IMG/VR virus record: IMGVR_UViG_3300032242_002454
Coordinates: 1 to 64,000 of that record
DNA length: 64,000 bases
Strand: one strand, 5' to 3'
This document shows, in pieces, positions 1 through 59,130 of the stretch; position 1 is the first letter of the stretch; each line of letters starts with the position of its first letter. A program made the position numbers and the translations under genes. The notes beneath the pieces are model-generated. The model was given only the letters and a program-made list of their open reading frames with translations. It had not been told where the DNA came from and searched no databases.

Positions 1-1
1 A

Positions 2-3378: not shown

Positions 3379-3417
3379 CATTTTGGCTAGAACAATTAAA
3401 TAAGGAGACAATTAGAT

Positions 3418-25666: not shown

Positions 25667-25674
25667 TTTATTTC

Positions 25675-35900: not shown

Positions 35901-37308
35901 TTTGATTATTCAATATACCAACAACTAAATTATTATTACTGGTTGGTGGAACAGCATTAATACTCCCTAACACTAAATTGTTGGCAACAGTACCACTTAG
36001 ATTATTAGTATTACCAACTACTAAAGAGCCATTAATATCTTTAAGAGTATTAGACTGACCAATTAGTAATAGTTTAGACGGAGCACCACTAGCAAGATTA
36101 TTATTTATACCTAAAAGAATACTTTGATCCAGACCAGAGATTGTGGAGTTACCTAGTCCAATAATAATAGACTTATTGGTATCTTGTAGGCTGATATTAT
36201 TACCAACAAAAATACCACTAGAAATATTAGTTATAGTTTGATCAGAACCAATGCAGATGAGTTTAGTGCCAGTAATTACATCTGAGCTGCCATATACCTT
36301 ATTGGAGTTACCACTCAGACTAACTTTAGAACCTACTACACTATTATCATTACCAATTAAAGTATTAACATTTCCAATGTAAATATTATTATCACCACTA
36401 TTGCTTACATAAGAACCTAAAACTACACCGGACGCTCCAGAACTCACTCCAACCTGTACTAACCCAACGCTAGTAGAAGTATTGAGACTATTATTGCTGC
36501 CTAAAAGAATATTGTAGTTGCCAGTAATGCTACTAGAATTACCCACGAAAATATTAGATAGTCCATTCAAATTAATTGAATCACCTAAAGCAGTATTATT
36601 TGCGCCAATTAATCTAGAATTATTTACTAGGGCAAAAACTTTGGCTCCATTGAAATAATTATAACTACCAATAGCTATGCCAGTATTAGATATTCCTGTG
36701 TTACTAGAACCTACAGTTATTAAATTAACACCTGTTACAGAATTGCTAACACCCATAACAGTATAAGTATAACCAGAAACACTATTGCTACCACCTAACA
36801 CTATATTTCTTAAATTAGCACTAAATACTGGTTTATTTGTTCCCTTATCATCAACAGTAAATAGTATTTCACCACTAGTAGATCCAGTTATAGGATCTAA
36901 AATTTTGGACATTATTTGTCCATAAACAATTTCATTATAGTTTGTATCTCGTCCAGCTAAATTAATCGTGGCTGGATAGCTACCAGATAATGGAGCAGTC
37001 TGGGGGTTGTGTACTAATAGAAGGGTGACACCTGTGGGGCAATTGGTGATACTTTCAACAATTAAACCATCTTTAGAGCATGGGGCTACAACATGTAAAA
37101 CAGCGTCGGGTAAGCCTGTGCCAATTCCTAATCTACCAGCAGAAGCATCAAAATATACTAATCCATTGCCGGTACCACGAATGCTAAAATCAATATCTTG
37201 TTTGAGAGCATTAAAAGAAGTACTAATTCCAGAAGTTTCTGATAATATAATTGATGGATTAATACCAGAACCAATATAAAGTGTACCAGATACTGTTTGA
37301 CTACTCAT
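32977..37308 (-). CDS. Tail fibre/adhesin with long G-x-x-N beta-roll (YadA-head-like) repeats
   Basis: Dozens of (I/V/L)-G-x-x-N repeats across about 35000-36800. Two copies of a GRLGIGT/NRVGINT-x-P module; Ser/Gly/Asn-rich. Confidence 0.75.
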   Translation of the reverse strand: MSSQTVSGTLYIGSGINPSIILSETSGISTSFNALKQDIDFSIRGTGNGLVYFDASAGRLGIGTGLPDAVLHVVAPCSKDGLIVESITNCPTGVTLLLVHNPQTAPLSGSYPATINLAGRDTNYNEIVYGQIMSKILDPITGSTSGEILFTVDDKGTNKPVFSANLRNIVLGGSNSVSGYTYTVMGVSNSVTGVNLITVGSSNTGISNTGIAIGSYNYFNGAKVFALVNNSRLIGANNTALGDSINLNGLSNIFVGNSSSITGNYNILLGSNNSLNTSTSVGLVQVGVSSGASGVVLGSYVSNSGDNNIYIGNVNTLIGNDNSVVGSKVSLSGNSNKVYGSSDVITGTKLICIGSDQTITNISSGIFVGNNISLQDTNKSIIIGLGNSTISGLDQSILLGINNNLASGAPSKLLLIGQSNTLKDINGSLVVGNTNNLSGTVANNLVLGSINAVPPTSNNNLVVGILNNQTGVYISSDGTISGTPSRTAGTVNNSIVAGINNLVLSGNSNVILGNKNIASGSNLSAVGSYNNLKNASNSYSIGNSNFLAGNQLGTVGSKIAVVGQESLIFNTIDSKMDVFGSGNVVLGYNQVVSSGIIIGTSNNLHGVNNIVYGRNNTLGSTRDKCSLDVAGLNITIPTQGVASKYLTGDKLLVCIQNPPSVSNTFIREITNVVESSMNNNTTISVGAPMAIDTTNGYYAINTAFDDNNSPNTSAISGWVMPYQRMGGAGGTETNPIYGSNNIVVGTNNTYLYSSGVIVGYNNNVSGVRNVVVGYGISGVADNTLYMGTNNSNKMVLDNDKVVFNSGATQDNFIIKSSSDNTSILNISLNNNRVGINTDSPTSEFSVSGLTTTSGLRVGFSAPDAYVLTTNTNGVGTWQLPVRISGLDTGLMYRVSDKVASGISEILYSPSTKTMNFNLGGDNGFYIASTGLFVNDQASTYKFRIRGSGGVEFAKVLLDTNFGNQRIDFYNISGNSGTFNNLTVSSGISLSPSLTGTFLYVNNSGKLNSSTTSPNSIIFANQSSLATGNTSIKWINSQQILALGATGVVNTDALTTNPDSFYNIVLSSNDTYDTVFNNRGLGNKFSVINSGSWSTRNGFHISPTGSVMINASSSDISRYNASGVVLYANGTAWFNSLKLGVGSTVSGYYLKTDQYGNLSFSDIDLKTQFSGIYPANITYTSQGNSSYRVDLGLTTKFPDGTDLTDGTMLVYRGDTWVGSTGLRVYQNTNPINDPSTVAGIEFGYKAQVTRTKHNHVFAGGSLKVSDDKYNGSSQFAQYYLRTRTTNGGQVRPLVTNWTKPAVGTTVPTTETSTNCINLDAFSGLQDAEYDRVWAYQIDVSVLWQSGSLTNTNRYGTKYGAGMFIEGALIKTVSGIRFSKLGTESVRTYGDTMPGGMTLYTQIVGSNPSRLSVVASGADNYTAIWSATARINQLNHYGADDLYTN

Positions 37309-37320
37309 TATAGTTACTCC

Positions 37321-40300
37321 TTAGAGTACTCCTTCTGTTTTTCTTGATAGGTTATTCATGGCCTTATCTACTTCTGTTACTATCATTCTTTGAATAGGCT
37401 CTTGCATATTAGCGAATACTGATGCTCCATTAATAACAACATCTACTCTGTGTGTGCCTTGTAGACTAACTTGTTCTGGTATCTTAATCTGTTCAAGTTG
37501 ACCAATAAATTTATTGAAGGTGTTAGTAAACTGGCTTAATCCATCCATATTTAGTGTATTTGAGCCATTATTATTAGATACACTATTTGTGGTTGTTGAG
37601 GATAGTTGTTTTTGATACTCTGAGAGTGTATTGACTGCTAATTGTAAGCTATTTGTGAACTGTTTTGTGGTCTGTGATAGGGTGGTAAATATTTGACCAA
37701 AATTAAATGTGCTACTACCAGTTACGGGTACTGAGCCTCCATCAGCAAGATAAACTGATCCACCACCACTCATATGGTTATTTCCATTATTTATTGATTG
37801 TAATAGTGGCAGATTTTGTTGGGTAGCTTGACGATTAACAACAAACTCTCCGGGTGTGAGCATGGCTGGGACAGTATCTGTTCCGCGAGGCTGGTAGTTT
37901 ACTAATGTTCCACGAGAAGCATATATCATGCCTCCATTAGCTTTATGTGTTGATGATAAAGATTTTTGTTTAAACTCTTCAAAAATACCATCAAGCATTC
38001 CAGGTTTTGATGTCTCTGGAGATAGAGGAGGTGTTTTAATTCCTGGTTTTCCTTGTCTAAATGCTGCTGCTGCTTGTTCCGCAGCAGACGGAGTATATGG
38101 AGCAGATAACTCTCCACCAAATCGTGCTATATTTCTTGTAAACGAAATAGTAGGTAGATTACGACCTATCTTGTCAGCGCCAGCACCAGCAACTACAGAC
38201 CCCAATAATGAAGCCTGCCAATGTTCTTCCATAGTATCGTTAATGTTTTTATTTAGTTCTGGAGCTAAAGCATTCAAATAATTTTCTTGAGCTTTATATA
38301 CTGCGGTCCCTGCTCCTAAACTAATAGCAAATCCACCAGGACCTGTGGTGGGTAAACCTAAAACTCCAGCACCCAAACCAGCTAAACCTGGAAGTATTGA
38401 TTTAGCGGCTCCGTATAAAGCAGCTTTGCCTTCTCCGGCCAACTTCTCACTGTCAAAATTAGTAATAGGTTGTTGGGGTAGCGTTGAAGTTGGACCCTTT
38501 CCATGACGATTCATCATAGGATTTAATGGTCTTGATGGATCGAATCCATCCTGAGCATAAATTACCCCACCCTTACTCTTAAATCTATCATCTAAAAGTC
38601 CCACATCCAACGCTTTATCTAGCTCATTTCTATTAGTAAATGATTCAATTAAAAATTGACTAATTTGTTCTTTGTTAGTTAATGTGTCTTGGACAGGAAA
38701 CCCACTACCAGTATATTCTATACCAGAAAGATGAGGTCGTGGACTATGATATTTAGAAGCCTTTATTCCTAATGCCGGAGCCATATTTGGATATCTTGCC
38801 GACATTTGTAAGTGAAAAGGTAGGTCTTGTATATCTACCTGTGTCGCTTGTTGAGCCACTTCTTTAGGAAATACGAACTCTGAGCCTCTCATAGCGCTAG
38901 CTTTTGTTAGAGGATGATCAGACATATTAGTATGTGATAGTCTATATTTCTCTGCTTCTCCTCTTGGTAATTGTAGTCTTTTAATAACCATGTCTTGAAG
39001 ACTATCTAATGGAGCATTATATTGTTCCCTTTGTGGTAAGGACTGTATGGTACCAGATCTTTTTGATAAATAAAATGATAATTGACTTGCTGCTTCTGTT
39101 TCATTCTCAGGAAAGAAATAACGACTTCTGTTCTCTCCAATTGAACCACCATCTCTAGCAGCCGCTTCCGTTAATCGTTGACTATATGTCGAGTTATCAA
39201 GTGTATCACTATTGCCAGAAGCTGCCTCCACACGAAGAAAAGTTATCATTTCTTTTAGATTGGTCGATGTTCCCACCATTTTTAATATAGCTTCTTCTCT
39301 TGGAGAAAGAGGCTTTTGTGCTGGAACTTGTGGTTTAGAAGACTGTAAATTTCCAGGAATAGCAGCACTAATCATGCTCTCTCTACCAGCCATTTTTAAT
39401 TCGTCAACAGTAAGTTTACCATCTAAAGCAGAAAAACCCAAGCTTAATCCACCACCAATACCTGCGGAAGCTGCTCTTTGACCAACGCTTCCCTTTAATA
39501 ATTCTGGTATGCGAGTAATATTTCCACCAGCTCTAGTAACTCCACCACCAATAGCTGATCCTCCCATAGAAGCCCATGGTCTTTCGTTCATTCTCTTATT
39601 CATGTACTCATTGAGTTCTGGAGCAAAAGCGTTTAAATAATTTTCTTGTGCGTGTGCGGCAGCAACTCCTGATGCAATACCTGTAACCGGGGCTGCTGGC
39701 CCACTAACTGCTCCTACGCCAGTTCCAACAAGAGTTGGTAAAACGCTCTTAGCTGCTCCATAAGCAAAAGATTCTGCTTGTAAACCAGCTTCTTGAGCAT
39801 AACCTAGTAATTGGTTTAAAAAACCTCCTGATTGAGCATAAATTATCCCACCCCTAGAGTAAGGCTTGCCTTGTTGATCATACTGGATACCAGCACCACC
39901 AAAACCAGGAGCTCTAGTATTTCTATCTCTATCTAGTGCCTGTTGTTGTCTTTCTTGAGCAGCTTCTGGGCTATTTTCTTGTTGTCTTCTTCTTTCCATT
40001 TCATTATCATAGGCATTCTGTCTATCATAAACTTCTTGATCATGCAGTGCTCCCCTTGTTTTGTGTTTAAACTCTCTAGTTGCCTGTTCTACTACTGCTT
40101 GATTTCTTTTATCTTGTTGAGCATTTCCGTGAGCTATTTTCTTTTGATCTGCTATTTTAGCCGCTAAACTAGGATAAGGTACAAAGCTCTCTGCTTTATT
40201 TCTTTTTGCTTCTTGAGATGCATTATAAGCTGTTCGTTTTTCAGCTGCTCTTTTATCTGCTAAACTACGGAAAGGAACAATACTTTCTACTTTTCTACCA

Positions 40301-43300
40301 TCTTGAGCATAAACTACTCCACCCTTACTAAATCCATAAGCTTTCATAATCTGTGATAATAATTCACTAGCTGCTGGATTATTTTTAAATGCATCAGTAC
40401 TTTCAGCTTGTATAAGATTAGTGAATATTTCTCTAGGATCTTTTCTCAAGTCTTCGGCAGTATAGAAGGTTCCTGTTGCTTTTTTTAATGCATCCCAACC
40501 TTTTGGATCTTTTAAGAATGTTTCAATATTTTCTTGTAATCTTGTTTTAGTATTGAACGTATTTTTAAATTGACCACTAGCATTTACCAATGCATGACCT
40601 AATTCATGATGTATTAGTTTTGGATCAACATATTTATCTCTGTAATGAATAGATCCTGTTTTGTCACCATACGCGAAATACTGTCCATCGTAGTTTGGAT
40701 TATCAACATCTCCTTGACCATGAAACTCAAGACCAAAGTTACGTCTAGCAAGATTACGAAGTTTCCTACTTCCAGCTGTCATTTTTCCAGGTTTATAGCC
40801 GGTGGTGTATTTGTCCAGTATTTCCACAAAGGATCGTTTATGAGCTTCAAGATTTTCAGGATCAGTAACATTAACAGCACCAGGAAATGGTTCATTACTT
40901 GATTTTCCGCTATCTGTAACAGGATTAGAATTTATACGCACTCCTGTTTTTCTCTCTATTCTATCGATTAATGTTCCATCTTGAGCATAAACTATACCAC
41001 CTTTATTAAAATGTGGAGCACCCGAATATTGACTTATTATTGTATTAACCTTGAGTAAGCGGATATATTCCTCAAAACCATGATCCTCTTGAGTTTTTAA
41101 AATATTATCTAATGTTTCATTATGTAATTGTATTATTCCTTCTTTCGCAGGTATGTTTAACCGAGTATTTTTATTAGACTTATATATTGCTTCTACATAA
41201 TTTCTTCTTTCGTGTAGATTTTTTATAACACTATCATATGCCTGTTGTTTGTTATCTTCTCCTATTTGTTTATTAATATATTTTTGAGCTTGATCTGCTT
41301 TTTCCTCGACATCTAAATCTTCATGAAGCATATCATTATTAAAAATATCATACATATTTTTGTTAGACAATATATCATGAGCTGCTTTTTTTCCAAGTAT
41401 ACTCTTAAAATCTTTGAGGGGATTTGGGTTCCCAGCAGCTGCTGCACCAGGAAGTCCTCCTCCTTTTTGAAGATAAACTGGTCCTCCCTTGCTCTTATTA
41501 ATAGCTTGCAATAAAGGTAGATTGCTACTAGTAGCTTGAGCATTAACAACAAATTCTCCCGGAGTAAGCATTGCTGGTACAGTATCAGTTCCTCGTGGCT
41601 GATAATTAATTAGTTTGCCATTTGAAGCATATACCATACCACCACTACTAAATACTCTAGAAGCTATTAGTAATTTGTTAGTATTTTTAACTAATGCTTG
41701 GCCGGTAGAATCCACCTTATCGAATCTTGCAGCATTAGATGTAGCAATAGACTGCGTATTGTTTAATAATTTAGGTATTTCTTTATCTTTAGTAGTTTTA
41801 GTAATATCAGAAACTTGTGATGAAACTGATAAATTATTTTTAGTATTATTAGCAATTTCTTGTTGTAGTCTAGAATTAAGATCTCTATCACGAATTTGTG
41901 ATGATGCTTGTGTGGGGCTTAATGATTTTGTTTCGCCTCCAGCTGCTCTATAAATTACTCCACCGTTACTCTTATTAAGAGCTTGTAATAAAGGAAGATG
42001 TTGGCTAGTAGCTTTAGCATTAACAACAAATTCGCCCGGTGTTAACATTGCAGGAACAGTATCAGTTCCTCGTGGCTGATAATTTACTAAGGCTCCTTCA
42101 GCAGCATAAATCATTCCACCATTACTGGCTCCTTGGGCAACTCTGAAAGCTGGATTGCCAGCAGCAACCCTAGGATATAATAATCCAACAGTATTATTAA
42201 TATTAAAAGCTGATAGTCTAGCAGCATTAGCAGCATCAGTATCTTGTGGGTTAATATAACCCATTTTAGTTAATTGTTTACTGATATTATTTCTTAGCAT
42301 GGCCTGTTGGGCAAGGTTCATGCTTTGTCCTCTTGCGGCCATCTTATCAATGCTAGTAAAGTTTCTTAATAACTTAGCAAAAGTTTTTCCTTGAGCTTTC
42401 TCTAATCTCTTTCTCTCAGCCATAGTAGCCACATCCGCACCATAATCACCAGACTTATTATATATACGAAATGCAGCTTGTTCAATCTGATCTTGACTCA
42501 TTCTTAATATAGAAATATCTCTATCACTATATTTATAGTTACCACCAACCGTTTGCTGACTCATGGTTTTAATGAGCGCTTCAGCTTGTTCTGGAGTAAA
42601 TGGACGGAAAAGATCTTGAGCAGCATCAGCTGACAATCCATACTTTGTCAAGAGTTTTTCATCTAGTCTGGGACTGCCACTTAGATTAAACTTTGCTCTA
42701 AGTTTAGATAAAGTTTGTTCTCTCCATCCCATGAAAGCTTCTGGACTTCTGAATTTATCGGGAGCACCCATACCAACAGCTTTACCTACCGCTAATTCCA
42801 AATTAAATCGTCTAGAATTTGCCCTATTAGATGCTAAAATTTGTGCTCTATTAGCTTCTCTCTCTTGTTTTTTCTCATAGTTTTTCCATAATCTATTTTG
42901 TTCAGCTATTGGGTAATTTTCAGCAGCTTTATTATTTAATACTATAATTTCTCTATTTTTAGCACTAAGTTGTCTTTCTAATCTTGCTTTTTCTGCTTTA
43001 TCATCATCGCTCATATTTTTAGGGTCTTTATATTTAAACCTATCTAAATCAGCTTCTATCTCTTTCTTTTCTTTTCCTAGTTTTTCTGTTTGTTTATAAA
43101 CATCAATTCTATCTCCATCAAAAGCAATCTTTCCAACTCCTGGTGGTAATGCTGGATGAGCAACTAAACTATTAGCTTCTGCTTGATTAGAGGCTTGTCT
43201 ATTTCTCTTATATGTTTCTTCTTCTTTTTGTCTCACTCTTTGACCAGTTGCACCAAGTCCATAAAAATCAGTCTGTCCATTAACAATATTTATTCTCATT

Positions 43301-46300
43301 CTACTACTGGTCGGCGCTTCATTTTCCGAGCCCATATTGCTAGCATCTATACTTTCTCCATTAACATTACCAAATATTGAAGAAGAAGCTCTATCAGCAA
43401 TTTTTCTCTGTTGTCTTCTTTGTTCTCTACCAGCTTTTGCTTTTTCATGTCTAGCATGAACTTTTTGAACTCTTTTTCTCTCTATTTCTTGTTGTGTTCG
43501 TTGTTCCATCATTTCTGTATAAGTTATTTGATCTTGAATAGCTCTATCATAATAGTTTTTATTTTCAGCTCCTTTAGTATTATTTCCTCTTGATACTCTA
43601 GTGTTACCATAAAGATAGCCAGGCACCAACGTAGAATCTTCAGAATTAAGAGCTTCTCTAGTAAGAATCATTTGTTGATTCAAAAAAGCTTCATCCATGA
43701 ATTTACCGGGCTGGTTTGCAACAGGTTTTGGAGCACCTCCATTTTGTATTCTTCTTCTTTCTCTTTCTAGTTCGGCTAATCTTTCAAGAGCTGATCTTTC
43801 TATAACATTAAATCTAGCTAAAGGATCTCTAAAAGGAATAACGGATGGTCCTCTTGGTCCTCTGGTTCTTAGTAATGCATTATTTACTCTATCTGTACTA
43901 TCAAAAGCCTCATGCTGTGCTTCTATTGCACTAGAAGCAGTATAACCAGCTTCCACCATAGTATTAATTGGTCTAGTAAAACCCTGCAAGGCTCCACCAA
44001 TCATAGAAGTTTCATTATGTCTGGTAGAGTCTACTCTATTTCTATGAAATGCTTCACGATCATAAAGAAATTCTCCACCAGTACGAATAGCATCTATACC
44101 AGTATTCAAAGCAATAGTACTAGCTGTTCCTGCTCTGGCGGTTGTAGCCATACTCCCCACAGTTGCATCGCCAGCAGCTGTTGCAAAAGTATGGCCAAAA
44201 CGAACACCAAATTCTCCTGTTGTGGTTAATAAATGAGCTGTTTTTTCATCTACCCCTGATGCAGAAAGAACAACTCCCGCACCCAGAGATGTCAAACTGC
44301 CAGCATTATTAGCAGAAAATCCACGAGCACCATTCGCTAATCCAGACCCAAGATTTCTAGCGCCAGATCTTGTACCAGATAAAAATCCTTTAGTTCTTTC
44401 ATATATACTTCCAGCTGTTTCTCTAGCTCTGGTTAAAAATGAAGGCTTGGTGTCTGGTAAGTCTGGTTTAAATGTTGTTTTTGGCTTGGGTGTTGTTGAC
44501 GACTGAGATGGTAATGGTTTTCTACCATCTCTACGATCAATAGCATCTCCTACTTCTTGAATATATGGTTCAAACATGGGATCAAGAATACCTGATGTAT
44601 AACCTTGACGATGAGCGGAACTAATTGCATTCTTCCACTCTTTCAAAGTTCTAGGGTTTGAAAGAGTAGGATCAGATTCTCTGGCTATTAAAAATCTAAA
44701 TAAAGGATGTCCAGGTCTAACATTAATACCAACATGATGTACCGGATTAGTAGTACCACCAGCCAAATAAACCACCCCACCCTTAGCATAGTTGCCAGAA
44801 TTAATACTCTTTAAAAGAGGCAAATTGCGCTGTGTAGCTGATCTATTAACTACAAATTCACCAGGAGTTAACATAGCAGGAACAGTGTCAGTTCCTCTTG
44901 GCTCATAATTAACTAAAGTTCCACTAGCAGCATAAACTGGACCACCTTGTGCTCTAGTCATAACATTGCCCGGTCTGGCTAATCCTAATCCTTCATTACG
45001 ACCTTGAGCATTATTAAAAGCATTGGTCAAATTAGTTAAAGCTGTAATTAAAGCTGTATTAGCAGTATTAAGTATTTGAGCTTGTTTTTCTAATAGTGGG
45101 TTAATAGCCTTTTGAGTAGCTTCGCCCAAAGCTGCCTGTTGTTGTTTGTATAGATTCTCTAATGCTTTGATTTGTGGATCTTCTTTTGGTGCAGCTCTTA
45201 GGTTTGCGATAATGTCTCTTAAAAAAGGATTATTCTCAACATTAAGTCCTTGATTCCTGGCTGTATTTTGTATTAGATCAGCTCTTAAATTATTGGCTTT
45301 TTGTTTATCAGTAACATCTAAACCGGAAACTTGAATAAGCTCATTAAATAAACTAAAACTATTTTTAGCTTCACTAGCAAAGGCTTCTTGAGCAGCTCCA
45401 ACGGCCTCCATATGCGTACCACCATCTTGGATAACTTTTTGATAAGCTTGTTGGGAAGAAACAGATTGGTTGATTGTGGTTATTTGACCATTTAATGTTC
45501 TATTAAGAAGGTCATAGGTGGAATTGAGATTTTTTAATTCTGTGGGGGTGCTTGTTACTAATTTTTCTCCAAAAGAAGCGCCGACCTGAGTTTTATTCTC
45601 TTTTTCTCCTCTAAGTTGTTCAATTTTAGCTTTAGTATTCTCCATATCTTTTCTAATAAGATCTGGTAAAGTTTCTAATCCTTTTTCAGTAGCAGCAATT
45701 TGTCTATTTAAACCAGCAAGAGCTTCTTTTTGTTTGTTAATAAGAGATATAACAGCAGGATCTGCCGCATTGCCTGAATTTTCTAGTTTACTAATATTAC
45801 CTTGAACAGCAGCCTGCTGACCCATCAATAAGGTTCTTTGGTTAGTTAAATTAGCAGCTGTTAAAGAACCAGGTTTTACTCCAGCATTTATGGCTGATTC
45901 TGTATATGCTCCTGATGCTCTTTCTTTAAGAGAAATATTTCGTCCTTCTCCCAAAGCTTCTTTGAGTGCAACATTACTATCTGCTATATATCCTTGTAAA
46001 TTAGCAAATTTACCAATAGCTTGAGTTTGAAGTTCAGCTGCTTTTTGTACAGCTTCTCCGTATTGATTTAATCCTTTTTCTATAAATTCATACTGACCCA
46101 ACATTGTATTGAAGGATTTTTTCTGAGAGTCAATTAATTGCTTAAGTCCACCAGTACTCTCTATCAAAGCTTGAGGATCTAATACTCCGTTATTCTTTTT
46201 AACATTCTCTTGAACAGCATCTTTTAATTCGGTGCGAATAGCATCAGAAACCCTATTATCTCCAAAGGTATCTATAAGTTGTTGAGTTAATTCTCTGGTG

Positions 46301-49300
46301 ATGTTTTCTCCTAGAACTTCACCACTAGCACCAGTCTGTTGTGCTTGAACAGCAATCTTAGTAATAGTATCTTCAGCTGAGGAACCAAATTTTGATAATC
46401 CTTCAACAAACTTCTTATCCGTACCAAACATACCGCTAACTTGACTAATTGCTGTTTGACGTTCTTTTTGTGAATAAGCATTAGGATTTTTTAATACGTC
46501 TTTAGACTTAAATTCTGTTTTTAGCGAAGCTTGACCACTTGCTATCTCATCAATTCTTTGACTAGCCTTATCTAGTCCCATAGTAGCTGCTGCAATAGCC
46601 TGATCCATGTTATCAAAAGTTTTAGAAATACTGACAGATGCAAGATTTAATGTTCGTGCAGATTGCTGTAAAGCTTTTACTCTGGATCTTTCTGCAACAG
46701 TAGCTTGTAGTGTTGCTGTTTCTTCTTTAAAATAGGTATTAACTAATTCTTTTTGTCTCTTCTCTATATCTGCTATGATCTGTGGATCTTGACCCGGTGT
46801 TTTCTTAATATTCTCTAGTCTTTGGTTTTCAGTATTAAACTTTTTATTTGTTTGAGCAATATTCAATTTTGCTAAGTCTTGATCTCCACCAAAAGAAGCT
46901 AAAGCTTCTTGAATATTTGATCCACTCTCAACCTTAGTACTTATTGTTTTAAGAGCTATCTCTCCAGCTACTTTTTGATTAGCAGTTTCTTCTTCTCCAA
47001 TTTGTTCATTTGTTGGTCTAGCAGCTTTATAGAAACCAAAAGAAGCCTTTTCTAGACCGCGAGTAAGCATACTAGGCTGACGTAGCTCTGCTTGTTTTGC
47101 TGATATTTTTTCTTCTTCAGCAGCAATACTCTTAAAATTTTGAATAATTGACGATGTAAGAGCAGCATCTTTTGGATTTTTATTAAGTTTTTCTAACTGA
47201 GCTTCCGCATTTGTTGCACTACCTTCTATTTTCTTTTTGCTAAGATCTATATCAGCTTCTGCAACTGCCTTTTTAAAACTATCCATAGCGAGAACTAAAC
47301 CAACAAATGCTCCAGTAGCTGCTCCTATGGGACCAAATTGCGCCCCAACAGATACGGCTCCACCAAAAGCTGTTCCAAAAGCGGCAGCACCTCTACCATT
47401 ACTTCCACCAACCATTGATCCTACCGCTTCTGCTGCCATAGGAGCAGCAAATGCTAATCCCAAACCTCTATTCATCCAAGCTGCTCTATTATCTCTCTTA
47501 GCCTGATATCTATTTCTATCGACATCAGACATATTAGCTATTTCATCTTCTGATGGTCCCATTATTCGACTTCTAATTGAACCCAATCCTCTGGATGCTC
47601 CTTGAAATGCTCTGGAAAGAGTAGGAAAGCTTTGTGCTAGCCTACTCTGAGATTGAGTATTTGTTTGAACAGCCTTATACAAACCTCCCCATGCGTCTGC
47701 TACTTTTCTTTCTGCTGCGGCCTTGGCCATAGAAACACTGACACTACTATCTGTTGCTCTAATTTGTCTAGTAAGAGATACTACCTGTTTACGTTGAGCA
47801 TCAGCTACAGCCTTAGCGGCATTTTGATCTCCTAAATCAGCTGCTTGTCTAGTACCAAGACTAACTCCTCCAATTACTTGATCTTCTGCTGCTCTATGAG
47901 CCGTATCAAAATCAACAGTAGGATTAGCTGCGGCTATCTGACCTACAATTTTAGCTAATAAATCATCTACTGCTTTTTCAGCTTGTGCCGATACTGCATC
48001 AAAACTTGATACTGCTTCATATGTTTTACCACCATCAGAAAATCCTTTTACTCTGCGAACAGCACCACCAGAACGATAACCTAAAGCTTTTGTTGCAGCT
48101 TCACGCAGAATAAAGCTGCCTACTGGTAAGTCTATTGGTCCAATACTATCGCTAGTACCTGTTCCCGAACCTTTAAAAACACTAATGCCTCCACTAGAAA
48201 ATGAGCTCATTCCGTTACGATCTGCTTGATTCATTCGGTTAAGTGTGCCATATCCTATTGCTTTTGCTGTTTCTGGTGGAATATAAGCCTCACCATTAGA
48301 AACCATAGCCTGAACATGTCCACCATCAGCTTTTTTAATGGGAGCTACTAATCTTGTTCCTCTAGTTATTTCTTTTTCTTCTAATAAAAGTTGACCGCTA
48401 ATCTTAGAAGCCATTGATTTATTTGTCGCAACATCATCGCTAGCTTTAGCATCCACATATTGCATACCGAGCTTATTGAACAAAGACCCGGCATCTCCAA
48501 GATAGTTTGGAAAATCGAAAGGTCTATTGGGATCAGGACTGGAATCGAAAGATCCCTTATTTCTCATAGCTCCTAAAATTTCTTCAAAAAAAGCACCCTT
48601 AGCTCCAGGATTAATACCTGCTAAAAATTTATCTTTCATTCCTTCTGTTACTGCTGGTTTAGGCAGACTACTAAATCCTGGTTTAGTAAATAATGTAGAT
48701 ACAGCACCATTAATTCCATCAAATAGACCTTGTCCGATTGCTTCATTAAAGTAATCTTTAGCTGGATCTGATAATCCTTGTTTAGTTAATACATACGGCG
48801 CTTTTCCTCTAGTATTATCTAGTACTTCTTTGGTATCTTTTTTGTATTTAGTAGGGGTTGCTGATAGTATATCTGTTGTGGTAATTAGACTCTTTTTCCC
48901 TTGGGATAATTTAGAAGATAAAATAGCAAAACCAACACTACTATCTTTAACTAAATTTCCAACACCTTTTAATCCTTTAAAAGATTCAGCTTTGTCTATT
49001 TTTTTAGATAGTGCGTTCTTTTTTTCTCCTACTTTTGAGGTATATTTCGCTATAATAGAATCTTTAATCTGTTGCTGTTCTAAACTTAAGTTTCTTGATT
49101 TTAATATTTTATATTCTTCTGAAGTAGCGCTAATACCCAGTCCTCTAGCAATTTCTGTCATTGAAGCTGGTTTTCCTTTATCTCCTCCTATAGAGAATGT
49201 TCTCATCTTCATAGATTCAATTCTGGATAACATCTTGCCTGTTCTTCTTCCTAACTTACCAGTTAAGTGATCTCTTTCTTCTCTTAAACTCTCCATTCTA

Positions 49301-52300
49301 GCTATAATTTCTGGTGGTGTAGTTTTGGTTTTTCTTGCTGGTAATTCAGATAATTGACTATTAATAGAAGATAATCTTCCTGATATTCCTTTTCCACTTT
49401 GGAAACGACTTAATATAGCATCAAGTAGTTGTGGTCTTCTTTGTAAGGTTTTAATATGTTGTTGTATATATTGAAAACCATCAGGAGTCAACAGTTTTTT
49501 CATAGCAACAATGTCATTATTCATGATTGCTGCTCTAGCAGCAGTACCGCTAATACCATTTCTTGCTATAGCTAATGGTGAGTATCCATATCTAGAATAT
49601 TTATCTGTAGTTAATGATCCTTTGTCGTCTCCAATAATAGCAACATTTCCTGTCTCTTTTGGTACTATGTATGAGTCATCTCCAACCTTAAATGAGCTAG
49701 GAATAGATCCCGGAGCACTTCCTTTAGGCATAGCAGAAACATTAAAGTCTCTAGAACCGAATACTGTTTGAGCCATACCTAGTCTAGAGGGACCATCTTT
49801 AGATGTTTGCGGCAGATACGCTGTTCTTATTTGTTGATCATCTCTTTTAAGAGGATCTATAGGAGTATCTCCAGACACTACTACAATAGTATCTTTAGCA
49901 CTAACTCCTGCTTTTTTAGCTCCTTGTTCAGCTGCACTAACATGACCAGCTGTTGCTGGACCAAAATTACCAACATAGATTGCTGTTTTTTCTGGTGTTC
50001 TTACTGTTGGTTGGTTAGTTCTCTTCTTAGAAAAATTAGAACCAATAGCATATGTTACTACTTTTTTAGGGTCAACTCCAGAGACGCTACTAGCTGCAAT
50101 ATAGGCTTCTCCTGGACCACTATCTAAAGAAGCTCCCTTCGTAGCTCCTACTTTACGTCCAAATAATCCTTGTCCTGTCTTATCTCTATACTTTCTATTT
50201 TCTACTAGTGCTGTTTGAGATTCTTTTGTTCTTGATGAAAGATTAATAATTCTATCTGATTGACTTAAAAATCCTCTTTGATTAGGACCAGCAACAGAAG
50301 TAGAGTCTATTATTTGATTTGATCTTAAAATATCTGCTTCTGTCAATATTGGATATCTATTAGTTTTTCTTAATCTGCTATTATCTGCCTGTTGAGCTTT
50401 AGAGCCTCCTTGAACAAATGTACTCTTGCCTGAACCTGCAACGCCATGAACAGTTGTTAGTCTACTTAAGTCTCCAGATTTACGTTTTGCTGCTGCAAAA
50501 TTAGATAAATGCATTTTATATTTATGTATATCTGCAATCTTAAGTCTTTCCATCTCTTTTCTAACAACAACTGCATGAATAGGATCATTTAATACGTCTC
50601 CATCTATATATCCTATATTACGAACTGTCTGTCCTCCAATATTAAATTTTTGAACACTTCCTCCTCCAGCATGTCTATTAATACGATGAAGATTTCCTAC
50701 TCCAATACTGCGAACAGCACTTTTTCTAATAACAAACTCACCAGGAGTCAACATGGCTGGAACAGTGTCTCCATCCCCAGAACCCGGAACATGACCACCA
50801 GCAGCAAAAGCCCTAATTTGTCCACCCTGACTATTTCTATTGGGTCTCATACCACCAATAAATCCTCTACCAAATTGACCAATAGCAGATAATCCTCTTA
50901 GTGCAAAGATAGCTCCTAAAGCTGGTAATGCTCCCTTAGCAGCATCTGTTAATCGAATTAAATTACTAGTTAAGTCTAAAGATAATTTAACGAAAGATTG
51001 GAATCCAGAACTTTGTCCAATAGATCGGACTAATCCTACAAATTCATTTCTTACTTTTGCCATTTGAACAGCTAAAGATTGTTGTGCTGTGGCAGCATCA
51101 ATTGCTAAAGAGTCTTGTCCACTTTGTGCAACCTTTAATGCTGCTTGAGCAGTTGCGAACTGTTGAATTAATGGGATCACCTTACCAATCTGACGGAAAC
51201 CACCAAGTTCTTCTACAATTCTGGAGAACTTTAAATCTCGGGGATCTAGTTGTGATAATCCTTCACTTAATCTTCTAACAGCTTCATATGGTCCAACGAA
51301 CTTGCCTTGTAGATCTGTTAATGTTACACCATATTCTTTAAGAGCATCAATTGTGTCGCCTCTTTGAATTCTGGTAAAAATTGTTCTTAAACCAGTAGCA
51401 ATAGTTTCAGCACTTTCACGAGTAGTAGCACGAACACTGGTAAATACAGCCATAAATTCATTTAAGGCTTGAGTACCTTCGCTAACTCCCTTACTAGCTG
51501 TAGCAAACACACCACCAGTACGTTGAATAGCAGTAATAATGTCACCGGCTTCAACAGCAAATTTAGCAGCTACAGCGTTTACTGAACCTAGTGCTCTATC
51601 TAATTCACCAGCACTAATACCGAACTGTCTCATCAATGCAATACTACCTTCTACAGTACTATTTAAATTATCGAATGATGGAGCTAATGCACTAAGTGCT
51701 AATGCTTTTAATGCTTTCTCTGTATCTCTAGCACTTAAACCAGCCTGAGCTAATGTACTAGATACTTTAATTAATTCATTAGATGACACACCAAACTTAG
51801 TAGATAGATCAGTAATTTCAGCAACTAATCCACCCAAGTTTTTAACTGATGTATCAGTAACCTGAGATACTCTCACTAATTCTTGATTAAAAGCAATAAA
51901 ATCAGTTGTTGCCGATGTTAAAGCATTAGATACTTTATAGATAACCCCTGTTACTGTAGCAAATGCGGCAAATCTACGAACAGCCAATGCTGATTGGCGA
52001 CCAAATTCCATAAAAGCCGAAGTAGTAGTATTTGCAGCATTAGTAGCAGCAGCATTTTGCTGAACCATATTTCGTGTAGCAGCATTGATCTGTTGTAGGT
52101 TTGCTGGTAGATTAGCAGCACTATTATTAACTTGCTGTATAGCTGCTCCAAGATTTCTCAAAGATAATGCTGTAGCATTTGCTGAAGCATTAGTAGCTTG
52201 TAAGGTATTATTAAAATTTCTAAAAGTTTGGTTGAGCGTATTAATATTACGGGTAACACCGGGATCAACACGAACATTAACATTAGCATTAATTGTTCCT

Positions 52301-52389
52301 AATTGTCGCCTAATATCAGCAACAACGGTCCTAATATTAGATGGTCCTCGTAAATTTAACTCTGCTGTAAGATTAAAACCTCTAGACAT
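37321..52389 (-). CDS. Tape measure protein, 5022 aa, with embedded enzymatic cargo domains
   Basis: N-terminal TP901-type TMP core (LAQAGLS, AAKFAVEA, TGLRTIFTRI, GGFRQIGK) and long Ala/Gln helical regions. GAGGT SD. Lies downstream of the tube and chaperone genes. Confidence 0.9.
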   Translation of the reverse strand: MSRGFNLTAELNLRGPSNIRTVVADIRRQLGTINANVNVRVDPGVTRNINTLNQTFRNFNNTLQATNASANATALSLRNLGAAIQQVNNSAANLPANLQQINAATRNMVQQNAAATNAANTTTSAFMEFGRQSALAVRRFAAFATVTGVIYKVSNALTSATTDFIAFNQELVRVSQVTDTSVKNLGGLVAEITDLSTKFGVSSNELIKVSSTLAQAGLSARDTEKALKALALSALAPSFDNLNSTVEGSIALMRQFGISAGELDRALGSVNAVAAKFAVEAGDIITAIQRTGGVFATASKGVSEGTQALNEFMAVFTSVRATTRESAETIATGLRTIFTRIQRGDTIDALKEYGVTLTDLQGKFVGPYEAVRRLSEGLSQLDPRDLKFSRIVEELGGFRQIGKVIPLIQQFATAQAALKVAQSGQDSLAIDAATAQQSLAVQMAKVRNEFVGLVRSIGQSSGFQSFVKLSLDLTSNLIRLTDAAKGALPALGAIFALRGLSAIGQFGRGFIGGMRPNRNSQGGQIRAFAAGGHVPGSGDGDTVPAMLTPGEFVIRKSAVRSIGVGNLHRINRHAGGGSVQKFNIGGQTVRNIGYIDGDVLNDPIHAVVVRKEMERLKIADIHKYKMHLSNFAAAKRKSGDLSRLTTVHGVAGSGKSTFVQGGSKAQQADNSRLRKTNRYPILTEADILRSNQIIDSTSVAGPNQRGFLSQSDRIINLSSRTKESQTALVENRKYRDKTGQGLFGRKVGATKGASLDSGPGEAYIAASSVSGVDPKKVVTYAIGSNFSKKRTNQPTVRTPEKTAIYVGNFGPATAGHVSAAEQGAKKAGVSAKDTIVVVSGDTPIDPLKRDDQQIRTAYLPQTSKDGPSRLGMAQTVFGSRDFNVSAMPKGSAPGSIPSSFKVGDDSYIVPKETGNVAIIGDDKGSLTTDKYSRYGYSPLAIARNGISGTAARAAIMNNDIVAMKKLLTPDGFQYIQQHIKTLQRRPQLLDAILSRFQSGKGISGRLSSINSQLSELPARKTKTTPPEIIARMESLREERDHLTGKLGRRTGKMLSRIESMKMRTFSIGGDKGKPASMTEIARGLGISATSEEYKILKSRNLSLEQQQIKDSIIAKYTSKVGEKKNALSKKIDKAESFKGLKGVGNLVKDSSVGFAILSSKLSQGKKSLITTTDILSATPTKYKKDTKEVLDNTRGKAPYVLTKQGLSDPAKDYFNEAIGQGLFDGINGAVSTLFTKPGFSSLPKPAVTEGMKDKFLAGINPGAKGAFFEEILGAMRNKGSFDSSPDPNRPFDFPNYLGDAGSLFNKLGMQYVDAKASDDVATNKSMASKISGQLLLEEKEITRGTRLVAPIKKADGGHVQAMVSNGEAYIPPETAKAIGYGTLNRMNQADRNGMSSFSSGGISVFKGSGTGTSDSIGPIDLPVGSFILREAATKALGYRSGGAVRRVKGFSDGGKTYEAVSSFDAVSAQAEKAVDDLLAKIVGQIAAANPTVDFDTAHRAAEDQVIGGVSLGTRQAADLGDQNAAKAVADAQRKQVVSLTRQIRATDSSVSVSMAKAAAERKVADAWGGLYKAVQTNTQSQSRLAQSFPTLSRAFQGASRGLGSIRSRIMGPSEDEIANMSDVDRNRYQAKRDNRAAWMNRGLGLAFAAPMAAEAVGSMVGGSNGRGAAAFGTAFGGAVSVGAQFGPIGAATGAFVGLVLAMDSFKKAVAEADIDLSKKKIEGSATNAEAQLEKLNKNPKDAALTSSIIQNFKSIAAEEEKISAKQAELRQPSMLTRGLEKASFGFYKAARPTNEQIGEEETANQKVAGEIALKTISTKVESGSNIQEALASFGGDQDLAKLNIAQTNKKFNTENQRLENIKKTPGQDPQIIADIEKRQKELVNTYFKEETATLQATVAERSRVKALQQSARTLNLASVSISKTFDNMDQAIAAATMGLDKASQRIDEIASGQASLKTEFKSKDVLKNPNAYSQKERQTAISQVSGMFGTDKKFVEGLSKFGSSAEDTITKIAVQAQQTGASGEVLGENITRELTQQLIDTFGDNRVSDAIRTELKDAVQENVKKNNGVLDPQALIESTGGLKQLIDSQKKSFNTMLGQYEFIEKGLNQYGEAVQKAAELQTQAIGKFANLQGYIADSNVALKEALGEGRNISLKERASGAYTESAINAGVKPGSLTAANLTNQRTLLMGQQAAVQGNISKLENSGNAADPAVISLINKQKEALAGLNRQIAATEKGLETLPDLIRKDMENTKAKIEQLRGEKENKTQVGASFGEKLVTSTPTELKNLNSTYDLLNRTLNGQITTINQSVSSQQAYQKVIQDGGTHMEAVGAAQEAFASEAKNSFSLFNELIQVSGLDVTDKQKANNLRADLIQNTARNQGLNVENNPFLRDIIANLRAAPKEDPQIKALENLYKQQQAALGEATQKAINPLLEKQAQILNTANTALITALTNLTNAFNNAQGRNEGLGLARPGNVMTRAQGGPVYAASGTLVNYEPRGTDTVPAMLTPGEFVVNRSATQRNLPLLKSINSGNYAKGGVVYLAGGTTNPVHHVGINVRPGHPLFRFLIARESDPTLSNPRTLKEWKNAISSAHRQGYTSGILDPMFEPYIQEVGDAIDRRDGRKPLPSQSSTTPKPKTTFKPDLPDTKPSFLTRARETAGSIYERTKGFLSGTRSGARNLGSGLANGARGFSANNAGSLTSLGAGVVLSASGVDEKTAHLLTTTGEFGVRFGHTFATAAGDATVGSMATTARAGTASTIALNTGIDAIRTGGEFLYDREAFHRNRVDSTRHNETSMIGGALQGFTRPINTMVEAGYTASSAIEAQHEAFDSTDRVNNALLRTRGPRGPSVIPFRDPLARFNVIERSALERLAELERERRRIQNGGAPKPVANQPGKFMDEAFLNQQMILTREALNSEDSTLVPGYLYGNTRVSRGNNTKGAENKNYYDRAIQDQITYTEMMEQRTQQEIERKRVQKVHARHEKAKAGREQRRQQRKIADRASSSIFGNVNGESIDASNMGSENEAPTSSRMRINIVNGQTDFYGLGATGQRVRQKEEETYKRNRQASNQAEANSLVAHPALPPGVGKIAFDGDRIDVYKQTEKLGKEKKEIEADLDRFKYKDPKNMSDDDKAEKARLERQLSAKNREIIVLNNKAAENYPIAEQNRLWKNYEKKQEREANRAQILASNRANSRRFNLELAVGKAVGMGAPDKFRSPEAFMGWREQTLSKLRAKFNLSGSPRLDEKLLTKYGLSADAAQDLFRPFTPEQAEALIKTMSQQTVGGNYKYSDRDISILRMSQDQIEQAAFRIYNKSGDYGADVATMAERKRLEKAQGKTFAKLLRNFTSIDKMAARGQSMNLAQQAMLRNNISKQLTKMGYINPQDTDAANAARLSAFNINNTVGLLYPRVAAGNPAFRVAQGASNGGMIYAAEGALVNYQPRGTDTVPAMLTPGEFVVNAKATSQHLPLLQALNKSNGGVIYRAAGGETKSLSPTQASSQIRDRDLNSRLQQEIANNTKNNLSVSSQVSDITKTTKDKEIPKLLNNTQSIATSNAARFDKVDSTGQALVKNTNKLLIASRVFSSGGMVYASNGKLINYQPRGTDTVPAMLTPGEFVVNAQATSSNLPLLQAINKSKGGPVYLQKGGGLPGAAAAGNPNPLKDFKSILGKKAAHDILSNKNMYDIFNNDMLHEDLDVEEKADQAQKYINKQIGEDNKQQAYDSVIKNLHERRNYVEAIYKSNKNTRLNIPAKEGIIQLHNETLDNILKTQEDHGFEEYIRLLKVNTIISQYSGAPHFNKGGIVYAQDGTLIDRIERKTGVRINSNPVTDSGKSSNEPFPGAVNVTDPENLEAHKRSFVEILDKYTTGYKPGKMTAGSRKLRNLARRNFGLEFHGQGDVDNPNYDGQYFAYGDKTGSIHYRDKYVDPKLIHHELGHALVNASGQFKNTFNTKTRLQENIETFLKDPKGWDALKKATGTFYTAEDLRKDPREIFTNLIQAESTDAFKNNPAASELLSQIMKAYGFSKGGVVYAQDGRKVESIVPFRSLADKRAAEKRTAYNASQEAKRNKAESFVPYPSLAAKIADQKKIAHGNAQQDKRNQAVVEQATREFKHKTRGALHDQEVYDRQNAYDNEMERRRQQENSPEAAQERQQQALDRDRNTRAPGFGGAGIQYDQQGKPYSRGGIIYAQSGGFLNQLLGYAQEAGLQAESFAYGAAKSVLPTLVGTGVGAVSGPAAPVTGIASGVAAAHAQENYLNAFAPELNEYMNKRMNERPWASMGGSAIGGGVTRAGGNITRIPELLKGSVGQRAASAGIGGGLSLGFSALDGKLTVDELKMAGRESMISAAIPGNLQSSKPQVPAQKPLSPREEAILKMVGTSTNLKEMITFLRVEAASGNSDTLDNSTYSQRLTEAAARDGGSIGENRSRYFFPENETEAASQLSFYLSKRSGTIQSLPQREQYNAPLDSLQDMVIKRLQLPRGEAEKYRLSHTNMSDHPLTKASAMRGSEFVFPKEVAQQATQVDIQDLPFHLQMSARYPNMAPALGIKASKYHSPRPHLSGIEYTGSGFPVQDTLTNKEQISQFLIESFTNRNELDKALDVGLLDDRFKSKGGVIYAQDGFDPSRPLNPMMNRHGKGPTSTLPQQPITNFDSEKLAGEGKAALYGAAKSILPGLAGLGAGVLGLPTTGPGGFAISLGAGTAVYKAQENYLNALAPELNKNINDTMEEHWQASLLGSVVAGAGADKIGRNLPTISFTRNIARFGGELSAPYTPSAAEQAAAAFRQGKPGIKTPPLSPETSKPGMLDGIFEEFKQKSLSSTHKANGGMIYASRGTLVNYQPRGTDTVPAMLTPGEFVVNRQATQQNLPLLQSINNGNNHMSGGGSVYLADGGSVPVTGSSTFNFGQIFTTLSQTTKQFTNSLQLAVNTLSEYQKQLSSTTTNSVSNNNGSNTLNMDGLSQFTNTFNKFIGQLEQIKIPEQVSLQGTHRVDVVINGASVFANMQEPIQRMIVTEVDKAMNNLSRKTEGVL
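37740..50830 (-). repeat. Dispersed intragenic repeat family in the TMP (GG-x-x-Y-A-x-x-G ... GTDTVPAMLTPGEFVV)
   Basis: Long copies at about 50630-50830, 44755-44950, 41935-42126, 41460-41650 and 37740-37940, and a degenerate double copy at about 48050-48330. Short GGxxYAQ(D/S)G copies at about 40976-41010, 40298-40333, 39823-39861 and 38546-38584. Confidence 0.9.
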
Positions 52390-58185: not shown

Positions 58186-59130
58186 TTACCAACCACTATG
58201 AGCAGAACGTCTCCAGGTATTATTACCTACACAAATATATAGATAGGATGAATCCCATACTATATCTCCAGGATTTCCAGAAGAAGACGAAGAAGCTATC
58301 ATTCTGTAAGGTATATTTGTAACTGACCTAGAAAAATCTACAATATCAGATAAATAGTGTTTATGTCCACTAATAGAATAATTACCAACAGGTTGTGGAA
58401 TATAACTTAACGCTCCACTAATATCTGTGAAAGATAAAGTAACTGTGCCAGATCTGGCATTAAACGATGTTACCCCACTATTTCCCAAAGAATCAACAGT
58501 GATAGTCTTAGAATTATTATCATAATAAATATTAGTATATCCGCTACCAACAATATTTAGTCTTTCATTAGTGGAATAATAAATTGCTGGTGATTTACCA
58601 TCTCCAATAACTAGATTGTGAAGATGACTACTATAGGAATATGATCCACTAGGCTGTTTGCTATCTAATGTTGTTTGGAGATCCGTAATTTGATCTATAG
58701 TATGATGATGTCCATTTACGCTATAGTCTCCAGATACTTGTGGAGTATAACCAAGCCTACTGATAATATTGGGAGCAGTTAAAAAGCTAGAACCTGATTT
58801 GGTATCAATAACTAAGCTACGAGCAGTATTATTATACGAAATAGTTGTATCACCTGAACCTACAACATTGAGATATTGTCCACTAGATAAATTAATAGCT
58901 ACCCTTGGGTCTGCTCCATCTGCTATGGATAGATAAATTTCTGGGAAATTAATAGTTATCGGAGGAATATCCACATATGACAAACCAGACCAGCTAGTAA
59001 CCCCATCTCCAATTTTTAAATATCTAGATTCGGTTTCATATCCTGGCTCTCCTAAAGCTAAAATAGGATTAGAAGCAATCCATTCTCCACTAGCTGCTCT
59101 TCGTAGTCTAATTCTTCGATAATCACTCAT
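58186..59130 (-). CDS. Fibre protein with Mtd/hyaluronidase-type N-terminal domain and HxH repeats
   Basis: IRLRR...W..SNPILALGEPGYET...LKIGDGVTSW..L.Y N-domain; two internal repeats ending GHHH/GHKH; C-terminal GNPGDIVWDSSYLYICV..NTWRR. Confidence 0.75.
   Translation of the reverse strand: MSDYRRIRLRRAASGEWIASNPILALGEPGYETESRYLKIGDGVTSWSGLSYVDIPPITINFPEIYLSIADGADPRVAINLSSGQYLNVVGSGDTTISYNNTARSLVIDTKSGSSFLTAPNIISRLGYTPQVSGDYSVNGHHHTIDQITDLQTTLDSKQPSGSYSYSSHLHNLVIGDGKSPAIYYSTNERLNIVGSGYTNIYYDNNSKTITVDSLGNSGVTSFNARSGTVTLSFTDISGALSYIPQPVGNYSISGHKHYLSDIVDFSRSVTNIPYRMIASSSSSGNPGDIVWDSSYLYICVGNNTWRRSAHSGW

Follow-up and report, generated by a model that had tools for sequence, protein, structure and literature searches.

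Why should the tail tape measure protein (TMP) of a phage carry what look like a kinase and a nucleotidyltransferase, one directly after the other? The question is raised by the first 64 kb (64,000 nucleotides, here called the window) of IMG/VR virus record IMGVR_UViG_3300032242_002454, a 204,625-bp sequence with direct terminal repeats that is judged complete, and whose near-identical matches come from aquatic and freshwater metagenomes. An original prediction, made from the letters alone, had placed the two domains at 49420-50620, inside the TMP, and had proposed to read them as a NadR-like cargo that rebuilds NAD+. Every motif it quoted is present in frame within a single giant open reading frame (ORF) of 5,022 amino acids (aa), in which residue n is encoded at window position 52389-3(n-1): VHGVAGSGKSTFV at aa 647-659 (50413-50451), IIDST at aa 693-697, NRKYRD at aa 731-736, IYVGNFGPATAGH at aa 804-816 (49942-49980), IVVVSG at aa 835-840 and GISGTAAR at aa 945-952 (49534-49557). 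The module is defined here as aa 585-1010 (49360-50637), within which the earlier interval falls. The reading that we favour, with confidence slightly better than even, takes the module to be a two-enzyme cassette of a polyvalent TMP, optional and subject to recombination; it is probably cargo that is delivered into the host.

On its family matches, the protein that hosts the module is a tape measure protein. The first ~520 residues match PF10145 (E 3e-25, 89.6 bits against a cut-off of 33.2), TIGR01760 matches the N-terminus (1e-23, 83.8 bits, cut-off 28.8), and the PHROG TMP families phrog_4211 and phrog_28 also match the N-terminal part. A Kyte-Doolittle scan places a hydrophobic segment at aa 486-504 within this TMP core.

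The motifs are not significant by themselves, because short patterns of this kind can occur by chance: by our own arithmetic with uniform residue frequencies, 5,000 random residues should contain ~0.1 Walker A and ~1 [TH]xGH motifs. The reality of the domains rests on conservation and fold. A phmmer search with aa 585-1010 against 1.84 billion representatives found 87 proteins, with identity down to ~27%, and nearly all are 2,000-7,279 residues long and align over all 426 residues. Among 72 of these matches, aligned as A1, K71, D102, G223, H232, R271, R285, R359, S363 and R368 are invariant (module numbering). With the addition of later copies, giving 94 of full length, K655, S/T656, H816, R855, R869, R943, S947 and R952 are retained in every one (ORF numbering), followed by D686, Y931, T949 and R745 (93/94 each), R735 and G815 (92/94 each), T813 (90/94) and D736 (80/94). 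Purifying selection on both catalytic centres is strong, and their near-invariance rules out that the module is a decaying passenger. Stand-alone copies were found in none of three large protein searches (phmmer with the module, the transferase alignment and the whole-module alignment), the two alignment searches returning only gene fragments, and a single-sequence search of viral contigs confirmed no related loci. Against PDB sequences, phmmer with the module sequence gave nothing, and hits came from the alignment profile alone.

The distribution of the module is that of an optional element. With the TMP core as query (aa 40-540), at least 798 giant proteins of 2.8-8.8 thousand residues were recovered, on contigs of up to ~235 kb from uncultured phages. 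Carriage was counted in the 120 best-matching of these relatives, which are 61-96% identical in the core. According to local hidden Markov models (HMMs) of each half, 30 of the 120 have both halves of the module, the other 90 have neither, and none has just one. In a phylogeny built from the N-terminal 560 residues, 18 changes are required to explain this pattern, at least 16 of them forced by well-supported branches. The window protein falls in a well-supported clade of five, the other four members of which (P0089-P0092) do not have the module. Identity to these four is 90-95% up to aa 572-584 and is then lost, and similarity resumes at aa 1288 (P0089) or aa 1354 (P0090-P0092). The pair thus behaves as optional cargo, in line with the cargo of the original prediction, and the presence of close relatives without the module excludes an essential TMP function.

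The slot between these breakpoints is variable in content. Beyond the module, residues 1100-1300 are matched by few relatives, and Pfam gives no match for aa 1011-1320 of the window protein. An ADP-ribosyltransferase (ART)-like cassette is found in 19 of 197 TMPs; it often begins at aa ~570, after the first copy of a repeated motif (below), and usually occurs without the module. P0110 has PF03496 ADP-ribosyltransferase above the cut-off plus a weak ART-PolyVal match (aa 1470-1705 and 830-920). Among 16 alternative cassettes scanned with Pfam, 15 give no match. In P0089 the stretch that replaces the module (aa 585-1178) has, by eye, a PD-(D/E)xK-like 'D...GEVK' and a HAD-phosphatase-like 'FIDDDERNINAAKAAGI', with no Pfam match. 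Precomputed Pfam annotation lists EF-hand domains (PF13499, PF13202 and PF00036) in the giant TMPs P0008 and P0160. Single-linkage clustering of the 700 residues past the first motif collapsed into one cluster owing to shared repeats.

The repeated motif, ~65 aa long, marks the left border of the slot in the window protein. The local HMM for it was built from five strong copies, and half-motifs of the form 'KGG[IV][IV]YAQDG' occur in addition at aa 3791, 4017, 4175 and 4601. At the point where similarity resumes in P0089 a nearly identical stretch is seen by eye. Giant relatives have a median of 4 copies at a spacing of ~970 residues. In ordinary TMP families the same motif lies near the C-terminal end, and therefore aa 1-~620 of the window protein looks like a complete normal TMP, to which 4,400 residues have been added. 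The motif could be a recombination, cleavage or docking site. As a strict cassette border it is ruled out, since the median start of the module is 284 residues past a motif copy, and the module is adjacent to one in only 3 of 69 cases. Total lengths of the sister TMPs P0089-P0092 range from 3,490 to 5,383 residues despite their nearly identical N-termini. If the whole protein were a ruler, these lengths would imply tails differing by hundreds of nm, and much of the protein is therefore probably no ruler.

What, then, are the two enzymes? The superfamily of the second is settled: it is a HIGH nucleotidyltransferase of the NadD/NMNAT/PPAT type, as the original prediction had it from the (T/H)xGH and SxT motifs, and both profiles and Foldseek agree on this. 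Foldseek with the C-terminal half (model residues 215-400) against PDB and Swiss-Prot returns NadD/NMNAT/PPAT-type families at E 3e-5 to 1e-3, with NadD and NMNAT first by E-value in both. The predicted fold is Rossmann-like and can be superposed on those of solved superfamily members. Among viral models, phage proteins named 'cytidyltransferase-like' or 'citrate lyase ligase' match best (E 8e-6). In structural comparison NadD is first by Z and by identity (21%, with identities across the branch of 14-21%), and PPAT fits equally well. Searched against PDB sequences, the A1 profile finds TmcAL-like 3gmi (3e-7, over 42 residues of the ISGT region), the NMNAT 9x6f (4e-6 over 150 residues, the best full-domain match) and a RibF-like protein (1e-3). 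The ISGTxxR of the module aligns with the ISxTxxR of MJ0951 (3gmi), NadD, CitC and RibF.

Family profiles are less specific. PF16581 is found in 56 of the 72 members of A1 and PF01467 in 30 at E <= 0.1 (best 7.6e-7); the window copy itself is under the PF01467 gathering threshold (12.7-14 bits against 21) and below the TIGR00125 cut-off (23.1 bits against 27.7). The commonest NCBIfam match is the generic TIGR00125, the NadD, CoaD and NadR models being found in few members and far under their cut-offs. The PHROG 'cytidyltransferase' families match 29 of 72, and the NMNAT family phrog_3462 two. Scores of hhalign against E. coli proteins are 37.2 for CoaD, 32 for NadR, 30 for CitC, 29 for RibF and 20 for NadD; forced global hhalign to NadD and CoaD is unreliable in mid-domain and was not used to equate substrate-binding residues. 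As no one family wins in the profile comparisons, no substrate can be assigned by similarity to any of them, and the earlier statement that it is not determinable from sequence holds. In the structural lists NadD and NMNAT are slightly ahead, which makes a pyridine mononucleotide (nicotinamide mononucleotide, NMN, or nicotinate mononucleotide, NaMN) the single best guess for the substrate of the transferase, as one candidate among several. The conserved Y931 presumably stands where NadD-type enzymes have a ring-stacking Trp.

The high CoaD score raises the possibility of a CoA-synthase-like pair, in which a PPAT-type transferase would make dephospho-CoA and a DPCK-type kinase would then act on its 3'-OH. 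This hhalign match is the best of those to E. coli proteins (probability 75%) and covers the N-terminal 55 columns, and the TxGH motif is as in PPAT. However, the CoaD model is touched by only 8 of the 72 members, all far under the cut-off, the C-terminal helical extension is longer than that of PPAT, and CoA synthesis at infection has no obvious benefit. We regard this as the most improbable of the explanations considered.

The first domain is more difficult to place. Sequence searches recognise nothing in it except the Walker A motif. Folded alone it is modelled by AlphaFold2 with a predicted local distance difference test (pLDDT) score of 93.8, and the best structural matches are all kinases; Foldseek gives no match below E 0.01 in PDB or AlphaFold clusters. 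A shape search of the ESM Atlas returns MeaB/ParA-type nucleoside triphosphatases (NTPases) instead (template modelling score 0.40-0.42). The P-loop kinase of the original prediction is accordingly retained as a P-loop domain with kinase-type structural matches: it is probably a very divergent kinase of the small-molecule type, an assignment that is insecure. In the model D686 sits in a short helix (model residues 100-104) after a strand (90-96), and may be the counterpart of the post-strand-2 Asp in PNK- or zeta-type kinases. The R735-R745 segment comprises the end of a long predicted helix (138-154) and the following loop, and D686, R735 and R745 all occupy positions at which residues with putative catalytic roles would be expected. 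IIDST is present as quoted, but its Asp is conserved in just 38 of 94 copies, which rules it out as a Walker B motif; the conserved acid is D686, in 'TEADIL'. Two residues of NRKYRD were checked, R735 and D736, and both are conserved.

The MeaB/ParA-type matches would fit a role in which the domains are not injected and serve the producing cell late in infection, or tail assembly or ejection, for example as an NTPase that aids folding, loading or release of the TMP. Late infection is when TMPs are produced in large numbers, and the conserved TMP core, hydrophobic segment included, is directly followed by the module. On the other hand, three quarters of the closely related TMPs do not have the module, which is therefore not needed for assembly or ejection, and a chaperone role leaves the strict coupling to an intact nucleotidyltransferase site unexplained. 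A role of this kind appears improbable.

The two halves appear to belong together. AlphaFold2 with A1 models the whole module with a pLDDT of 93.7 and a predicted template modelling score of 0.90, which predicts a fixed mutual arrangement of both domains, and they are thus predicted to pack as a single rigid unit. Strict co-inheritance and this predicted packing argue that the domains work together. NadR, CoA synthase and PAPS synthase pair these folds for two consecutive ATP-dependent steps on one nucleotide cofactor, and with these precedents a two-step mechanism is adopted here. One nucleotide-like small molecule would be acted on by the two domains in turn, each of them with ATP: either a hydroxyl would be phosphorylated and the phosphate then adenylylated, or adenylylation would come first and a 3'-type phosphorylation second.

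The first of these orders is that of the NadR-like scheme, in which the kinase would convert nicotinamide riboside (NR) to NMN and the transferase NMN to NAD+, so offsetting depletion by Thoeris, DSR or SIR2 systems at injection. The leading positions of NadD and NMNAT in the structural lists and the full-domain match to 9x6f favour it. However, the domain order is reversed, the P-loop half (aa 585-788) here preceding the transferase (aa 789-1004), and by hhalign the P-loop half resembles that of E. coli NadR at the Walker A motif only. TIGR01526 is matched by 4 of 72 members (best E 0.012, far under the cut-off), PPAT fits equally well, and NMNAT models do not exceed PPAT or generic ones. The products of TIR and SIR2 NADases are nicotinamide and ADP-ribose rather than NR or NMN, and these are unusable by a pair of riboside kinase and NMNAT; in addition, the few enzyme copies in a virion would need to outpace an activated NADase. 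NadR and NadM have been described from phages (PMC7824862, PMC9503650). However, phage NAD salvage uses Nampt, and NadM-bearing phages always carry NadV (PMC9503650), whereas PF04095 (Nampt/NAPRTase) gives no match in the complete 204,625-bp genome, with control genomes positive. We consider NadR-like rebuilding of NAD+ unlikely, and this part of the original prediction is not upheld.

A different use of the same folds would be a dinucleotide effector. Here the transferase would make or bind an ADP-dinucleotide or nucleotide sugar, and a kinase of the zeta or AvrRxo1 type would phosphorylate its sugar hydroxyl (for example NAD to 3'-NADP, or a UDP-sugar), poisoning a host pathway or inactivating a nucleotide immune signal early in infection. 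CTP_transf_like and Zeta_toxin domains do occur together in some viral clusters, a low-abundance target suits few delivered copies, and the ART cassettes of the same slot also act through NAD+. Set against this, the Zeta_toxin Pfam model (PF06414) is reached by no member and is not among the 25 families listed, and we judge such an effector clearly unlikely. The pair could also process nucleic acid ends, with a PNK-like kinase and an adenylylating enzyme acting on RNA or DNA ends in tRNA repair or in protection of the ends of the incoming genome. T4 PNK appears in the whole-module Foldseek list (359 columns, E 1.3e-3), and the best PDB sequence match for the ISGT region is to 3gmi, whose relative TmcAL acts on tRNA. 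However, that match spans just 42 residues, the NadD/PPAT branch of transferases has small phosphorylated molecules as its substrates, and a ligase or phosphatase partner domain was not found in the analysis. End processing thus seems very improbable.

If the module is, as we favour, an optional two-enzyme cassette, its loss or exchange for other enzymes in sister phages indicates that it is probably delivered cargo. At the onset of infection the cassette would exit the particle together with the TMP, and in the cytoplasm of the host it would serve as an effector of take-over or counter-defence; the ART-like cassettes in the same slot of sister phages would act likewise. Delivery with the TMP is suggested by analogy with model phages and by the parallel with injected polyvalent proteins, and injected multi-enzyme virion proteins have precedents (PMC5512222, PMC9503650). 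Of the virion-delivered two-step pathway first proposed, the two-enzyme virion cargo is supported by a mobile and conserved pair, and the NAD+ rebuilding is not. Several points weigh against this reading. No enzyme domains were recognised in the 5,022-aa protein beyond these two, and a folded 45-kDa unit should not fit the lumen of the tail tube, so that unfolded transit or another site in the virion would be needed. The TMP N-terminus, near which the module lies, is the head-proximal end in model siphophages and leaves last. Few TMP copies are present per virion, which limits bulk metabolic effects.

A broader proposal, which we put forward only tentatively and think rather doubtful as it stands, is that the giant TMPs of this uncultured freshwater jumbo-phage group are modular scaffolds for delivery, in which a conserved TMP core would be followed by segments that are exchanged between phages by recombination and bear a shifting set of ATP- and NAD-using enzymes. 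The kinase and adenylyltransferase cassette would then be a novel type of pre-made, injected counter-defence enzyme acting on a low-abundance nucleotide (an immune signal or NAD-derived) before phage gene expression.

Table 1. Features of the giant TMP gene, with residues of the 5,022-aa ORF and window positions.
Feature	Residues (aa)	Window position	Strand	Remarks
Giant TMP gene	1-5022	37321..52389	minus	5,022 aa, single uninterrupted frame (ORF list)
Conserved TMP core	44-520	50830..52260	minus	Family matches; 61-96% identity in 120 best relatives
Repeat copy 1, left slot border	516-581	50647..50844	minus	Local HMM 4e-32; core DTVPAMLTPGEFV
P-loop domain, predicted kinase fold	585-788	50026..50637	minus	N-terminal strand and helices, then five-stranded P-loop core
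Walker A GVAGSGKS (K655)	649-656	50422..50445	minus	K 94/94, S/T 94/94
D686, candidate catalytic base just after strand 2	686	50332..50334	minus	Asp 93/94
Arg-rich putative lid	R735 to R745	50155..50187	minus	R735 92/94, R745 93/94
HIGH-superfamily nucleotidyltransferase domain	789-1004	49378..50025	minus	
TxGH motif T813-A-G-H816, ATP-binding signature	813-816	49942..49953	minus	H816 94/94, G815 92/94, T813 90/94
ISGTxxR motif, second nucleotide-binding signature	946-952	49534..49554	minus	S947 94/94, T949 93/94, R952 94/94
Rest of variable slot	1005-1350	48340..49377	minus	Poorly conserved, no family match
Two degenerate repeat-motif copies, right slot border	1351-1439	48073..48339	minus	Weak local HMM, E 0.1-0.2
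Repeat copies 2 and 3	2476-2543 and 3418-3482	44761-44964, 41944-42138	minus	Identical core DTVPAMLTPGEFV
Repeat copies 4 and 5	3577-3642 and 4813-4882	41464-41661, 37744-37953	minus	Identical core DTVPAMLTPGEFV

The composition of the 5,022-aa protein is unusual in that it has zero cysteines and 8 tryptophans, the enzyme module having neither residue. The genes neighbouring the TMP gene are tail-fibre-like or have no known function. Three further very large ORFs lie directly downstream on the minus strand, at 17642-25681, 25675-31281 and 32977-37308, encoding 2,679, 1,868 and 1,443 aa; PHROG matches none of them. Of the three, Pfam was applied to the 1,443-aa protein alone, which gave a weak beta-roll match and no other. 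A 314-aa protein encoded at 58186-59130 (minus strand) combines an Mtd_N domain (N-terminal domain of the major tropism determinant, 3e-12) with a phage tail repeat; it is usually Mtd-type proteins that diversity-generating retroelements target. A DnaE-type replicase of the phage's own is suggested by a 624-aa protein encoded at 3437-5311 (plus strand), which shares ~33% identity with phage proteins that carry the annotation DNA polymerase III alpha subunit. The sheath family PF04984 gives no match, and the divergence of the phage is too great for this to decide morphology. No GenBank phage is matched by tblastn with the module, and there is no close cultured phage.

Among known enzymes, NadR is similar in having an adenylyltransferase of the HIGH superfamily and a P-loop kinase in a single chain, with transferase motifs of the same type (GxFxPx[HT]xGH and ISxTxxR); NadR is a free cytoplasmic enzyme, however, whereas the module is embedded in a virion protein. 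From NadD, archaeal NMNAT and PPAT (CoaD) the transferase half differs by its low identity of 14-21%, the window copy being under the Pfam and NCBIfam cut-offs. The small-molecule P-loop kinases among the closest known systems are the zeta toxins, AK6, UMP kinase, PNK, DPCK and NRK1. The best viral structural matches are the phage 'cytidyltransferase-like' proteins (phrog_395 and phrog_3041, E 8e-6 to 2e-5) of cyanophages S-PM2 and P-TIM68 and Agrobacterium phage Atu_ph07, and some viral clusters add a Zeta_toxin-type kinase. Those proteins are free-standing or otherwise fused, however, and the module has no BLAST-level similarity to GenBank phages.

Tape measure proteins are usually viewed as rulers that carry at most a cell-wall hydrolase. 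TMPs with peptidoglycan hydrolase motifs, in mycobacteriophages and others, carry an enzyme domain that is used at infection, but their target, the cell wall, lies outside the cytoplasm and they need no ATP, whereas the module requires ATP and therefore needs the cytoplasm. No description of a TMP carrying the present domains was found in the literature. The absence of a sequence-detectable stand-alone relative, together with near-invariant sites, makes the module a clean target for finding a phage effector with a novel activity. A physical puzzle arises as well, from sister TMPs of 3,490-5,383 residues and from a folded 45-kDa enzyme that should not fit in a tail tube. Should the substrate prove to be NAD-related or an immune nucleotide, this would be the first such counter-measure delivered ready-made in the virion.

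The closest parallel in organisation is with the polyvalent proteins described by Iyer et al. in 2017. These are large virion-associated polypeptides with unrelated enzyme domains, including ADP-ribosyltransferases, and with cassette-like recombination, for which an early-infection role is predicted (PMC5512222). The scaffold here is different, being a TMP: the word 'tape' is absent from the paper, which does not mention tape measure proteins, and among the passages found there was no P-loop kinase + HIGH transferase pair (131 domains are listed in the paper). The TMP family resembles the polyvalent proteins in combining the kinase and nucleotidyltransferase module, the ART-like cassettes and many unrecognised cassettes, with at least 16 gains or losses. 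A TMP family of hundreds of members with interchangeable, cytoplasm-dependent enzymes would extend the injected polyvalent-protein strategy to the lumen of the tail.

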